The notes under the pieces are model-generated. The model was not told where the DNA came from. It did not search any database and saw only the letters and a list, made by a program, of their open reading frames with translations. A stretch of DNA of 64,000 nt, taken from Macrostomum lignano (Eukaryota). Below, in pieces: positions 39,501 to 48,500 of this stretch. A program made the position numbers and the translations under genes. The stretch is from contig NIVC01001406.1 in assembly GCA_002269645.1 (NCBI GenBank), positions 186,001-250,000 on the forward strand, in the 5' to 3' direction. The number at the start of each line of letters is the position of its first letter. Positions within the stretch are counted from its first letter, which is position 1.

Positions 39501-42500
39501 CTGTAGAGCTGTGTGCGCCAGTAATATAGCAACACAAATACTTATCTTGCTCAGTGTGCTCAGGGCACAAACAGCAAACACATCGGTGGCCAGGGGGCGA
39601 ATATAGCCCCAAGGGGGAGTGGGCCCGACTGGGCCAAACATTGAATAAGGGTTTGACACGCACAGGCCAGTGGACAAGGCTATTCTAGGTATTGTTGCAA
39701 CGTTGGATGTGCATTAGGGACGCTTTTTCGAAAGCTAATAAAGGCGATTTTTAGGTCTATGAGCAATTTTTAGGTCTATGGGCGATTTTTAGGTCTATGG
39801 GCGATTTCTAGGTCTATGAGCAATTTTTAGGTCTATGGGCGATTTTTAGGTCTATTGGCGATTTTTAGGTCTATGAGCAATTTTTAGGTCTATGGGCGAT
39901 TTTTAGGTCTATTGGCGATTTTTTGTAAATGGACGAATTTTTAGGTCTATGAGCAATTTTTAGGTCTATGGGCGAATTTTTAGGTCTATGGGCGAATTTT
40001 TAGGTCTATGGGCATTTTTTAGTCGATAGGCGATTTTCAGGTCTATGGGCGATTTTTAGGTCCATAAGCAACTTTTAGGTCTATGGGCGATTTTTAGGTC
40101 TATGGTAAATTTTAGATCGACGAGCGTATAGGCAATTTTAAAGTATCTAGGCGACTTTTAGGGCTATAAGCAATTTTAACAATGATCCAGGGAAGAGTTT
40201 TAGACAGGATGCAGGGGAGTTTTAGGTAAGGTCTTATAGGCGATTTTTCGGCGGTGGTCTTGATGATCATCTGGATTTCTGCTCCTAAATCTGAACACGA
40301 TATGATTGCTGCTGAGCATCAATTTTTTATAAAAATCGAAAAAACCTAACACTGTATACATACGAAGGAGCAAGTTTATGACTAACCGAAACGCTGCCAC
40401 GAAGCGATCGGCCGAATTGCTGAAATTCATCGTCTAGCAAGATTTTCGCCTCCATTAGTTGCAGCAATAGTTCGAAAAACTGCGACCGAAGCAGCTCGGC
40501 ATCCGACATCAGCTTAGCAACTCGATCGTCGGGCTCGCAATCGTCCGATAGGCGATTCAGAACCTTCACAACTGCGTCTAAAGCTTTCAAGCGCGACTGG
40601 ATCTCCTCTTCGCGTGCCTGTCAAAATGTGATGCAAACAAAAACGATTCAAGCTACTGACAGTAGGCTGTATAAGAAAATTTAGCTTAATTTTACAAATA
40701 TTGAACATAATGTAATGACTGATACATTGATATACAAGTCCCGCTTATAGCTTAGGCCAAATCTCTGATTAGAATAAGAATAAAAAATACGCGAGTTAGT
40801 ATTCTCAATGGAAATGCTCTGATAATAAAATAGTCAAAGCTACATACAGGCTACCCAAAAAAGCACTCCTGACTCATCATGACTTGGCCTGCTGAGCCGG
40901 CTCTGGGGAATAGCGTCATGCCTCATCACGTACTAAGCACACTCGTATTAGTAGAGAAAGAGACGGAAAATCCATATTGGGGGGGGGGCAATTCAGCCCA
41001 GCCCAGCAGACCGGGCTGGTGGTTGGTAGGGAGGGCCGATGAACTTTCGCAGACAGAAACGGTCCCCGGTCTCGCCATCCTTTTTTGCCTTATCTAAATC
41101 CGATTACTAGGCTTGGCTGGGCCTGAATCCCAGCCAGCCTTACCCCGAATTCGTTCGGGAGCCAGGACTGAAAGGAGACGCTCTAACGGTGGCGAGCGAG
41201 AGCTAAAACACGGAGGGGCAGAAGATGGCGGGGCAGCTGTACACTCTCTAGCACCCGCGCGTGCCCGCCTGTACAGGCAGTGTAGCGGACAGCAATGAAG
41301 GAGAGAGGCTGGCTGGCTGGGTAGGAACAGTTGCCAGCAAATGAACATCAGCAAAATCTACCAGTAAGTAGTTTCGAAAGCCTTGAATTGAACAGCGCAA
41401 TCATTCGCTTGCTTAAGCCTCTCCGCTGTCTGCTTTCAGTTTTCACTCACTCTCTGCGTGCTAACCGTACGCGGAGACTCGTAAAATTCTGAATCAGGGC
41501 CGCAAAGTAGTTTAAAACAGTGAGAAAGGCTTGAAAGTTAAAAGGTCGGATACATTTCAGTGTGTATTGATAATTATTTGTAGTGCGGCTACAGACTCCA
41601 GTTCAGAGCCATCAGAAGCCGTTAATTTGCAACGAGAAGTCTGCTAACAAAGGTAAGATAATATGAATTTTGATTATAACACCCGAAACAGAGAAGTGAA
41701 TGGTCGGCTGTTTCTGCATTTTGCTGGGTTAAAATTCGGCACTTAGCTCTGAAAGCTAGTGGTATTAATTTATAGCAAGTGGTTGAGTATAGATTGGGAG
41801 CTATCTAGAAAAAGGAACCGGAGAAAGATAGAAGACAGAGAGGAAATAAAAAAGAGAACAGGCCGAATTTAGGTTTGAGGCGGAACTAGGCTGTCTCACA
41901 GCTCGTGAACAGGCCGCTGAATATCGATCGATCTCTTTCTAGGGCTGGTGGAAGGAGGTGGAGAGAAAAAGGAAGAGATGAGGAGGCGAAACTAGGGATT
42001 GGAGAAAAAGAGAAGAGAGAAAATAAGATTGAGGAGCAGGCGGGATAGGGTAAATACTCGTAGTATTGGAGCAAGGGGGAATATCGATGCTGCTGAGCAT
42101 AGTACAGCCTAGGATTATACTGCACTGGAAATATTTAAACCTCTGAGCTTCGAAAGCACTAAACCAAAGCCAGAACACTAAAATTGCTTTAAAGCCTTCT
42201 AGCGCCGAAATGCCGCCCGGCCTGCTGCACGAAGAGATCCTCACCGGGGTGCAGGCGGTCAAGCAGAGCTTGGCTAGCTTGAAACTAGACCAGCAAGAGA
42301 AGCTGCGCCAAGCCGCCGAAGCGGATCATCATCAGCAGCAGCAACAACAGTCGCCATGTCTGCGACAGGCGCTAGAGCGAATCGAACAGGGCCTGGATGA
42401 GGCCGAGATTCTGGCTGCATTGGCGCAGTACCTGCAGTACAGCGAATCTGAGAAGCAAAAACTCAAGAGCCAGGTAAGCGGATAACCAGGTAGAGACCTC

Positions 42501-45500: not shown

Positions 45501-48500
45501 GGCATATATACTTAGTAAAACAGCTTTCTACTTTCAGTTCAGTAGCAAAGAATACGTAAGCTTTTATATAAAAATAACGGCAGCTGAAATGACTGATAAG
45601 TTTAGAAGCCCAAGCTTGCAGGCGTAAACAACTTGCTAATTGGTTCAGCAATAATGTACATTAGCCAGTCCACTGAAATGTACATGGCAGCTTTAGGCTG
45701 GAATTCCGAGGAAGGCAATAAAAATTGGGGCGGGGCGAGGGTAGTGTGGAAAGGCTCAGTTGGATGGTTTAAGCGGGGGGGGGGGGGTAAGAGCCAATAA
45801 ATTGAGCCTTGGCTTTAAAATACATTAAAATGCTTCTGTTTAACTTACTACTGAACTGAAAGTAGCTTACACGTAAATGTGCTGAGTGGCCTATCTAGTT
45901 ATTTTAGTATCTGTGGTTACAATACTTCGGCCTACTGATAGTAGTGCGATATAAAAAAGTATCGACAATAAAAAAGCATCATAAAAAGAAGAAAATTACC
46001 TGAACAGAGCGCAACAACTCGGTCTTCTGCTCCGAGGTCAGCACGGTTACATCCGGCGGCACTTTAATACGGTTTTCTGAATAAAAAATGAACAAAACAT
46101 AAACACGATTATAAAGAAAATACTAAAACAGTGGTGTTAAATAATACTTGAAAAAAATACAGACCATTAGCCGTATCTAGCCAATCTCGAGCTTCCTGGA
46201 GGTCGCATTCCAAGTCTGAAAATAATGGTGTGAAAAATTGGATGCTTAATTTTTCTTCTACCATTTTTTAAATAAAAAATCGGGAGAAATAACGAAAAGG
46301 ATGTGTTCAACTGGGAATATACTACGGAAGGCGAGGGTCATTTCGGGTCACTGTCACTTGAGAGGAAAGGTTGGGTGAACAATTAATTCCCACACTTGCA
46401 CTAGCAGGTGAGCTAGTGTAGATGAGCCAGAAATTACAATTCAAGCCCCAGCTAGTGTCGTGAATGAGTTTTGTCACGCAACAATAGAATAAATAATTAT
46501 GATGAGTAGTGGGGATCTGATGCTGCAGAAGCAAAAATTTCCACTGCCTAACGAGCCACTTCAGCATAACTGTTACAGCAGAAACTACAGCTTCAAAGAC
46601 TAAAAGCTATTACGTCAGGCACTCATTGTATTCTATCTTTTCTAGAGTATGGACGGGAAATCAATATGAGTGCCGATTCTGGCATTCCCAGCTATTGCAG
46701 CTGGCAAGCGCGAGTGACTCATCACCGCTCTCAGGGTAGGCGATTAGAGCAGTCACCCCCACACTGCCCTCAGACCCTCTAAGCAGGGCTGAGCTCGCAC
46801 TGGGTTGAAAAAACACACAACTGGGATCTGCGTTAACAATGGCGATGAAATGAAGCTGGCCTAGGCTTATACTGAGGAGGGCATTGTTGAATGAATAATA
46901 TGATTGAGCCGGCAGATCTGAAACCCCCATCACTGAGTTCAATGATTTACACCGCCAGTGTTCAGATGCTGCACGCCATTAAGCTTAATTAGATCCGATC
47001 TGATAACAAAAAAATACCACCTAACCTAATGAACCCGGAATGACCCATCACAAGTATCTATAGACGGAATAAGTGGCGGCCCAGCAACAGAGGATCTGGG
47101 AGGCCGGCTCAGCAACTGATGATTTGGGAGGCTGGCCCGGCAACTGAGGATCTGGGAGGCTGGCTCAGCAACTGATGATTTGGAAGGCTGGCCCGGCAAC
47201 TGAGGATCTGGGAGGCTGGCCAAGCAACAGAGGATCTGGGAGGCTGGCTCAGCAACTGAGGATCTGGGAGGCTGGCTCAGCAACTGAGGATCTGGGAGGC
47301 TGGCTCAGCAACTGAGGATCTGGGAGGCTGGCTCAGCAACTGAGGATCTGGGAGGCTGGCTCAGCAACTGAGGATCTGGGAGGCTGGCTGCAGCACAAGC
47401 TGAACAGTGAGACGCACACAAGGCGGGCGCAGCCACGGGCAGGTGAACTCACCAACTAGCAGCGAGCCGCCGTTGCCAGGCCAGAGCTCCAGCGCCGCGT
47501 CAACAGCCAGCCAGGCCTCCTGCATGCTGCGCATCTTGGCGGAGACGTCGTCGGCAACGCGTGGATTAGCGAGGCAGAGCGCGCTGGCATAGTGGGACAC
47601 CTTCTTCTGAGCTGACAGGTGGGCGCGATGGTCCGATTCGGCGTCCTTGACAACCGGGAATTATAATCAATGTAGACAGCTTTGGGTGGCAGACTCTTTT
47701 CCATTGTACATAAATTTAACATCAAATTTAGACTGGTTGTTAAAGGGACATGACCCCGTCATAAATTTAAGGAATATGCGGGGACAGTGGCCCCTCCTTG
47801 GCATTAAGATGATGCCTTTAAATTCGCAATTTATGCAAACTACAATGCGTTATCCATTCGGAAGGGGTCAGCTGCCCCCTTTGACAATGGGGGTCATTTT
47901 GCGGTCAGTGTGTACTCCGAAACTAGATAAGAAAAAAGATGAATAAGCAAAATGATGGTTCAAAATACAAGGAAACGACAGTGATAAGAGAATAAATGAA
48001 TGACGCGGTTCACACTATACTGGATGGACAGTTTATACGCATCTTATATAATGCGTATCAAACAGCATAAGCATATCAAACAGTAAAATATGGCACAAGC
48101 CTATCGATTACAAACGCCGCGTTCGCGCGACCACCCACTTTACGATTATCCGTATTCGTCATATTCATAATACTCACTCACACTATAGGCTTATAGATAA
48201 TAAGCAAGTAAAGCTGGCCCGCAGGCCTTATATTATAAATAAAGAGCTCGATAATGCAAAAACTCCAATGCTGGCTCACAAACTGCATTACGTAACCCCC
48301 CCCCCACAAGGCGCCCTCAATCCCAGTCGCGTTTCTGAACTCAGCCAAAACACACAATTTCCAGCCTCAATCGGAACCCAATTCTTTCTCTCCTGGAGTC
48401 GCTCGGGTTTCTCCGTCGCTTTTTAATTTTTTTTGCTGATTACCCAAGCTTCCCAAATTTCTAAAACAATAGCAGCCCGGCCAGCTCAAGGGTTGTTTAA

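Follow-up and report, generated by a model that had tools for sequence, protein, structure and literature searches.

In the genome of the flatworm Macrostomum lignano, a complete kinesin light chain (KLC) gene lies on the opposite strand within a long intron of another gene, which by homology encodes a KASH/spectrin-repeat protein. The two genes were studied in a stretch of 64,000 nucleotides (hereafter the window) that corresponds to positions 186,001-250,000 of contig NIVC01001406.1 in assembly GCA_002269645.1 (Mlig_3_7). It is likely that this gene pair, present in three copies in M. lignano, associates a KLC with a host gene that belongs to a spiralian KASH/spectrin family and encodes a probable nuclear-envelope adaptor, and that the nesting itself is neutral and lineage-specific. 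An original prediction had described the same pair as a KLC gene nested antisense inside a Klarsicht/nesprin-like gene carrying KLC-binding W-acidic motifs, and had suggested that both could be co-regulated. The exon boundaries, motifs and intron that it gave all hold to the base.

The kinesin light chain gene and its host

The KLC gene is carried by the forward strand (42210-45034). It consists of three coding exons, located at 42210-42473 (N-terminal coiled-coil region), 42815-43498 (coiled coil, linker and first tetratricopeptide repeats, TPRs) and 44489-45034 (stop codon included), all joined by GT-AG introns, and encodes a 496-aa product. The gene has its own 1.6-kb upstream region within the host intron, and an AATAAA signal is found 3' of its last exon, at 45183, still within that intron. 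The product is identical to GenBank PAA68287.1 (BOX15_Mlig010223g3) and shows 100% identity to an M. lignano UniProt entry named 'Kinesin light chain'. Its residues 8-478 align with the human/mouse KLC1 of PDB entry 9pmb (chain C, E=1.1e-153), and its best database matches are animal KLCs, with 50-60% identity. The similarity to KLC1/2 extends over the full length and includes the characteristic order of an N-terminal heptad-repeat region followed by a TPR domain of six repeats. Furthermore, the TPR2-TPR3 segments, which form the groove for the tryptophan of W-acidic ligands, are invariant or nearly so across 51 aligned KLCs, including that of the window; for the assignment of individual contact residues, we assume that of Pernigo et al. 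2013. The identification of the nested gene as a true kinesin light chain is secure.

A retrocopy is ruled out by the two introns that the KLC gene has kept, one of which, located before exon 3 (IREK|ILG), occupies a position common to the KLC gene of the nemertean Tubulanus polymorphus. Most of the same intron (intron 2) is filled by a 55-bp minisatellite (43670-44319; 11.9 copies, 96% matches), each unit of which contains CAGCCAATCA on the reverse strand. The KLC genes of the three loci differ in span, and the copy number of this minisatellite may be the cause.

The host gene is carried by the reverse strand and comprises 14 coding exons spread over ~44.4 kb, from an ATG at 57005 to a stop codon at 12632-12630 in the frame of its paralogues. 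The exons were rebuilt from open frames, GT/AG sites and matching phases and then compared with annotated M. lignano proteins. The annotation of this assembly was built by mapping RNA-seq data and a de novo transcriptome onto the genome (PMC5730564). The first 12 exons translate to exactly GenBank PAA68288.1 (826 aa, BOX15_Mlig019917g1, 100% identity). Two full-length paralogues are found among the M. lignano UniProt entries, P0125 (1,268 aa) and P0126 (1,266 aa), and tblastn with P0125 places all 14 exons in the window. The loci with full-length paralogues that were used for comparison are located on contigs NIVC01000330.1 (L001) and NIVC01000587.1 (L002).

The KLC gene lies between exon 6 (46000-46076, acceptor ttattcag, donor gtaatt) and exon 7 (40387-40617, acceptor tttgacag, donor gttagt) of the host. 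The intron that separates them, intron 6 (40618-45999; 5,382 bp, phase 0), holds the entire KLC coding region in antisense orientation. As the original prediction had proposed, both exons are joined in frame at 46000|40617, reading ELLRSVQ up to the junction. The homologues of Tubulanus, Octopus, the snail Candidula and the rotifer Brachionus align across this junction without any gap (counterpart TIEQIEDKLCHHL|LLQRDIESHSKIVSAVLKL), and all host junctions are GT-AG with consistent splice phases. The join is the one found in the public annotation. Exon 11 (17097-17296), which encodes the two motifs LDQLWDHY and HLQWEAD, belongs to the same gene, since PAA68288.1 is reproduced at 100% and both full-length paralogues, P0125 and P0126, include it.

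The other exons, all on the reverse strand, can be followed along the protein. Exon 1 (56838-57005) starts with MPVTC and encodes a basic motif, P-x-KRRR-F/L, conserved between the N-termini of the M. lignano, Tubulanus and Octopus proteins; it resembles a nuclear localisation signal, an odd feature for a KASH protein facing the cytoplasm. Exon 2 (51818-51991) encodes a conserved helix, LWxxIxxxYxxLM. The first spectrin-like repeat starts in exon 3 (49424-49579), which is followed by exons 4 (47453-47645) and 5 (46165-46215), and the remainder of the second repeat is encoded by exon 7, beyond the KLC gene. Exon 8 (32248-32425) ends with DVLPFS and exon 9 (27636-28263) encodes a low-complexity region that is probably disordered, given its composition. 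The junction between them is spanned by the motif DVLPFSEDEYEKI (32265-32248 and 28263-28240), which is near-identical in Tubulanus (DVIPFDEDEYEKI); its tyrosine lies among acidic residues and could mark a second short linear motif, of the Y-acidic type for instance. Exon 10 (21098-21453) precedes the 67-residue acidic module encoded by exon 11. The helical region that follows starts in exon 12 (13932-14683), of which PAA68288.1 uses only 14683-14615. After exon 13 (13543-13744), exon 14 (12630-13067) encodes the last helical segment, then a transmembrane segment that starts at 12757, and finally a short luminal tail. In a simple codon-usage scan of the window, exons 1, 2, 5 and 7 went undetected and the signal of exon 8 stayed below threshold; such a scan is therefore incapable of deciding the gene model.

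Host protein family and tryptophan module

The intact host protein (~1,270 aa) is tail-anchored and shows, in order, two N-terminal spectrin-like repeats, ~450 residues of low complexity, the acidic module, ~450 helical residues, a transmembrane segment and a short luminal tail. A phmmer (HMMER) search against 1.8 billion representative proteins identified Tubulanus XP_074662995.1 as a distant homologue (E=1.4e-15) and also retrieved proteins of Octopus species, Candidula and Brachionus, the latter named 'nesprin-1' by its source. The N-terminal repeats, the module and the tail are collinear between the M. lignano host and the Tubulanus protein. The Octopus, Brachionus and Candidula orthologues exceed the gathering threshold of Pfam Spectrin over the region that corresponds by homology to M. 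lignano exons 3-7. A family profile of this region, with M. lignano as its first row, matches beta-spectrin (5e-13), dystrophin (1e-7) and the first repeat (SR1) of utrophin (1e-6), as well as alpha-spectrin. At the other end of the protein, P0125 and P0126 carry a single transmembrane segment near the C-terminus, followed by 21 residues and the stop codon. The tails of the orthologues end with HLRYVRGPPPV in Tubulanus and ELRYINGAPPI in Octopus, and the ending of the Drosophila Klarsicht tail is presumably similar to the former (LRY-x-RGPPP-x). With Pfam KASH (PF10541, cut-off 23 bits), the Tubulanus tail passes at 25.7 bits and that of Octopus scores 18.8 bits. When compared with the PDB, the tail profile finds as its three top matches KASH peptides of nesprin-1/2, taken from SUN-KASH complexes, at weak E-values (0.2-0.4). 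UniProt automatically names the M. lignano host entries 'KASH domain-containing protein'. At the family level, the homology evidence thus places the host in a KASH/spectrin-repeat family that, judging from its matches, occurs in Spiralia (flatworm, nemertean, molluscs and rotifer). The nesprin/Klarsicht likeness announced by the original prediction stands at this level; the M. lignano protein taken alone does not show it in Pfam.

The acidic module is a sharply conserved candidate for motor binding. Its 67 residues include 20 D/E and only 2 K/R, and it carries both tryptophan motifs of exon 11, hereafter W1 (LDQLWDHY, 17246-17223, reverse strand) and W2 (HLQWEAD, 17162-17142, reverse strand). 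The abundance of such motifs is of no weight: P0125 contains 13 tryptophans and three W[DE] dipeptides versus 1.8 expected in 1,268 residues, which is not above chance. What exceeds chance is the conservation of the two motifs across phyla. Indeed, they are separated by 27 residues in both M. lignano and Tubulanus, and 17 of the 36 ungapped positions are identical, in an area that is otherwise unalignable between both species. The Tubulanus counterpart of W1 is ETAWDNYQDLPY (AWDNYQDLPY), and the Octopus counterparts of the module are ETAWDNYQAPLY and PALQWSGE. In the complex of a SKIP peptide with KLC2, the tryptophan of the ligand (p0) is housed in a pocket between TPR2 and TPR3, with a leucine two residues before it (p-2) and an acidic residue directly after it (p+1) (PMC6214655). 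LEWD has been reviewed as a KLC ligand, and LEWD/EWD motifs are found in nesprins and UNC-83 (PMC12581424). W2 (S-H-L-Q-W-E-A-D) fits the SKIP pattern at its three positions, its p-2, p0 and p+1 residues being Leu, Trp and Glu, and it resembles the LEWD/EWD of nesprins and UNC-83.

A third motif put forward in the original prediction, PLWDLL of exon 2 (51889-51872), is rejected as a W-acidic motif: it aligns with LWKAI, LWAAI and LWQAI of the orthologues, within the conserved helix LWxxIxxxYxxLM-D-xx-I-I-E-x-C. Of the three motifs then proposed, two are conserved with their spacing and only W2 has the p-2/p0/p+1 residues. At another site, the Tubulanus orthologue (P0131) carries an extra W-acidic motif of canonical appearance, DLSWDDDD (within residues 95-106), just after its N-terminal conserved helix; Octopus has DLSLDDED at this site and M. 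lignano nothing similar.

The host protein would probably be a nuclear-envelope cargo adaptor, in which the conserved LQWE, and perhaps LWDHY too, may recruit kinesin-1 through the TPR groove of KLC, as do the LEWD/EWD motifs of nesprin-2, nesprin-4 and UNC-83. The chances that it recruits kinesin-1 at the nuclear envelope by binding of KLC to W2 are put at roughly even, because of the deviations in the motifs and the degenerate KASH tail.

Several observations weigh against the family assignment or the adaptor function. Pfam Spectrin (PF00435) finds no match in the M. lignano host alone, whether in the open frames of the window or in P0125. An AlphaFold2 (AF2) model of exons 3-7, made with no alignment, is all-helical and of low confidence (predicted local distance difference test, pLDDT, of 63). 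With this model, Foldseek returns weak matches to spectrin repeats (utrophin SR1, template modelling score, TM-score, of 0.70-0.74, E about 0.1) and generic helical bundles, and nothing at E<=0.001. The luminal tail of the M. lignano paralogues, with 21 residues instead of the ~30 of KASH proteins, ends with QPNGAPY and lacks both the PPPX ending and LRY. Pfam KASH gives no match to it at E<=10, and phmmer of this tail alone against the PDB retrieves no KASH peptide. The M. lignano KASH peptide is degenerate, shortened and devoid of the PPPX ending, and its binding to SUN proteins, and hence the localisation of the host at the nuclear envelope, is uncertain. As for the motifs, the residue at p-1 of W2 is Gln and not Glu, and W1 (D-Q-L-W-D-H-Y) has no Leu at p-2 and is of the WD-x-YQ type. 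Since this leucine is absent and a conserved x-Y-Q follows WD, W1 may serve another binding partner. Lastly, in an AF2 cis-fusion of the M. lignano KLC TPR domain, natural flexible sequence and an exon 10/11 peptide, computed with 50 aligned KLC homologues, the TPR domain is modelled at pLDDT >90 and the segment carrying the tryptophans at 31-47, without any docking signal; as a single chain with an unaligned peptide, this is a weak test.

Among the closest known systems is UNC-83, a KASH protein of Caenorhabditis elegans that is an adaptor of kinesin-1 and dynein. As described in PMC11908248, it begins with a pair of spectrin-like repeats and includes extended disorder, with the EWD that binds KLC located in an unstructured part; further spectrin-like repeats lie towards the C-terminus, before the transmembrane segment and a short KASH peptide. 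The M. lignano host is of comparable size, and its parts follow one another in the same order. However, its motifs are L-Q-W-E and L-W-D-H instead of EWD, and no sequence match to UNC-83 was found, so that the likeness is one of architecture as described (PMC11908248). The same is true of Klarsicht, a Drosophila KASH protein with spectrin-like repeats involved in motor-driven positioning of nuclei and organelles (PMC11908248). Nesprin-2 and nesprin-4, whose LEWD binds the KLC TPR domain (PMC12581424), share with the host the spectrin repeats and a W-acidic motif located in a flexible region, a few hundred residues before the transmembrane segment and KASH tail. Furthermore, the KASH peptides of nesprin-1/2 give the best PDB alignments with the spiralian tail profile. 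Unlike nesprins, M. lignano lacks LRY...PPPX in its tail, which fails Pfam KASH, and has two tryptophan motifs at a fixed 27-residue spacing instead of a single LEWD; compared with giant nesprins, it has no calponin-homology domain and far fewer repeats. The host also recalls the bipartite W-acidic adaptors (SKIP, calsyntenin-1, vaccinia A36) by its two W-[D/E] in an acidic, probably disordered stretch, and W2 shares with SKIP the Leu at p-2, the Trp at p0 and the acidic p+1 (PMC6214655). However, these adaptors are unrelated to the host, which has Q or L rather than E or D before the tryptophan, and the conserved x-Y-Q that follows W1 is outside the known motif.

The integrity of the window copy of the host has also to be considered. 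Over exons 12 and 14 (~1.2 kb), it differs from L001 by four 1-bp indels and one 3-bp indel, with zero substitutions. In exon 12, the window has an additional T (+T) at 14649 and lacks a G at about 14541; in exon 14, it has an additional G at 12905 and an additional GCT at 12738-12736, and lacks a G at about 12705. The +T at 14649 leads to a premature stop codon (14617-14615) that cuts PAA68288.1 to 826 aa (vs 1,268 aa at L001), and the transmembrane segment that begins at 12757 is out of frame through the indels. If these frameshifts were real, the window copy would be a pseudogene with a truncated 826-aa product, devoid of the C-terminal repeats, transmembrane segment and KASH tail, which would count against the proposed role of this copy. 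This is unlikely, while being the alternative that survives best. The four frame-breaking indels are found relative to L001 and L002 alike, the GenBank product of the locus ends at 826 aa, and M. lignano has recently become polyploid and contains redundant copies of its genes (PMC5730564, PMC10733133). However, the same ~1.2 kb shows no substitution relative to L001, whereas L002 differs from both by dozens of them; at least one indel lies within a homopolymer run (TTTT at 14649); and the first two indels, +1 then -1, restore the frame, as does the second pair. Indels without substitutions are typical of long-read consensus errors. The frameshifts are probably errors of this kind, because the indels come without substitutions and in +1/-1 pairs in a highly redundant long-read assembly. 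Indeed, according to the assembly paper, non-repetitive blocks with a duplicate at >=95% identity amount to 180 Mb (PMC5730564), and short-read polishing would be weak in such blocks.

Origin of the nesting

The nesting is found at all three loci. L001 and L002 both have, as does the window, an antisense gene for a 496-aa TPR protein placed between exons 6 and 7 of the host. The three KLC copies found in the assembly form one annotated cluster (Mlig010223 g1-g3), and each of them lies in the same intron of a host copy. These copies are products of recent duplication and are therefore not independent observations. That the nesting has been kept in the three of them is expected and speaks neither for nor against a function.

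Comparison with other animals points to an old intron and a later arrival of the KLC gene. Tubulanus has an intron at the identical aligned position and phase as host intron 6 (CHHL|gtacgt ... cag|LLQRDIESH), with a length of 2.26 kb and no gene called within it; since its position and phase are shared and it is gene-free in the nemertean, intron 6 is considered old and the KLC gene a newcomer. On the 32-Mb Tubulanus chromosome OZ123226.1, the KLC gene (21.14-21.17 Mb) and the KASH orthologue (28.77-28.79 Mb) are 7.6 Mb apart; their presence on one chromosome could be due to chance or to an old linkage. In the two orthologues examined, nesting was not found, no gene being called inside the KASH gene of either Tubulanus or Octopus bimaculoides. 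In C. elegans, unc-83 and klc-2 are, as we take it, separate and non-nested loci. The KLC gene would thus have been relocated into a long pre-existing intron of the host, before the divergence of the M. lignano gene copies. Most likely, this relocation is neutral and lineage-specific, a reading that is favoured because there is no sign of coupling between both genes and because nested pairs are common.

The nesting could instead be functional, if the location of KLC inside the gene of its adaptor coupled their expression, be it by a chromatin domain common to both or by interference from head-on transcription that sets the ratio of the products, and if selection kept it there. This is very unlikely. 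The recurrence of the three KLC copies in the same intron of three host copies would agree with such a function, but it comes from recent, non-independent duplicates. The window and L002 encode one and the same KLC protein while their host exons show differences at numerous sites, but purifying selection on KLC itself explains this conservation. A third point in favour is the conserved motif of the host, which is of the KLC-binding type known from nesprins and UNC-83. On the other side, the nesting is not seen in the nemertean and octopus orthologues, and the two genes, which are transcribed head-on, have no common promoter, the host ATG being located about 12 kb beyond the upstream end of intron 6. 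Moreover, nested genes are common: PMC3814207 puts nearly 10% of D. melanogaster genes in nested structures. Highly improbable, as a whole, is the combined reading in which KLC moved into an ancient intron of a KASH adaptor gene, the double-tryptophan module of this adaptor is the KLC ligand, and selection maintains the nesting because head-on transcription or a common chromatin domain sets the ratio of motor adaptor to cargo receptor. If true, gene nesting would here link the expression of two binding partners.

The LRRTM genes within alpha-catenin genes and 2mit within timeless2 are likewise complete opposite-strand genes located in an intron, without any exon overlap. The present pair differs from them in that KLC and its host may encode direct binding partners, and no report of this was found for KLC. 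The statement of the original prediction that no such arrangement was known needs qualification: GenBank already lists both genes, under the adjacent accessions PAA68287.1 and PAA68288.1, and a literature search on the locus tags and on nested KLC genes found no paper discussing the arrangement.

The last alternative, a chimeric annotation in which the exons flanking KLC and the exon carrying the tryptophan motifs come from different genes merged by transcript assembly, is effectively refuted: the word-indexed homology search with exons 2-7 that gave no matches is a word-index false negative (the same exons are present at 100% in P0122), and the fragmented or transposon-fused UniProt models of an older assembly (P0123, P0124 and P0127) are outweighed by consistent splice phases with GT-AG at every junction, by full-length host models at two other loci and by one Tubulanus and one Octopus protein that each unite the N-terminal repeats, the tryptophan module and the KASH tail, the former also having DEDEYEKI, the motif found across the exon 8|9 junction. 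An in-frame ATG in exon 9 could begin a separate gene; such a gene is excluded by the splice phases, the annotated transcript and the collinear orthologues.

Surrounding sequence and significance of the family

Intron 7 of the host contains an LTR (long terminal repeat) retrotransposon (34382-38959, reverse strand) that belongs to neither gene. Its two 230-bp LTRs (34382-34611 and 38730-38959) are 100% identical, and it carries reverse transcriptase, RNase H and integrase domains, the pol frame being split over several frames. At L001 and L002, a similar element lies in a different host intron, upstream of KLC. The UniProt entry P0124 is a fusion of transposon sequence with host exons 8-9. Nearly every host intron contains a different minisatellite or microsatellite, including a repeat of (TGTC)n type that extends over ~3 kb (17973-21048). 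One and the same 28-bp minisatellite (GGCTCAGCAACTGAGGATCTGGGAGGCT and a close variant) is found at 47078-47395 and 16550-17077, shortly downstream of host exons 4 and 11, respectively. Downstream of the host, the region 457-5181 (reverse strand) carries GC-rich open frames with coding-like codon usage, one of which has a hydrophobic, possibly transmembrane segment. A Pfam search on these frames gave no matches; they probably correspond to the gene of 666-671 aa called next to the host at L001 and L002. Rfam and tRNA scans over the 64-kb window gave no matches.

As an arrangement, the locus is one more opposite-strand nested pair, both members of which were already in GenBank. A functional nesting would be a rare example of gene architecture that couples interacting partners; the present evidence makes this unlikely. 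The most useful result is a conserved and uncharacterised spiralian family of KASH/spectrin-repeat proteins with an UNC-83-like architecture and a sharply conserved candidate motor-binding module. This acidic module (WD-x-YQ ... LDDSHLQWE) is almost unchanged between flatworm and nemertean. It therefore offers a concrete candidate for a motor-binding site in spiralian nuclear positioning, one that is testable in M. lignano, in which transgenesis is possible.

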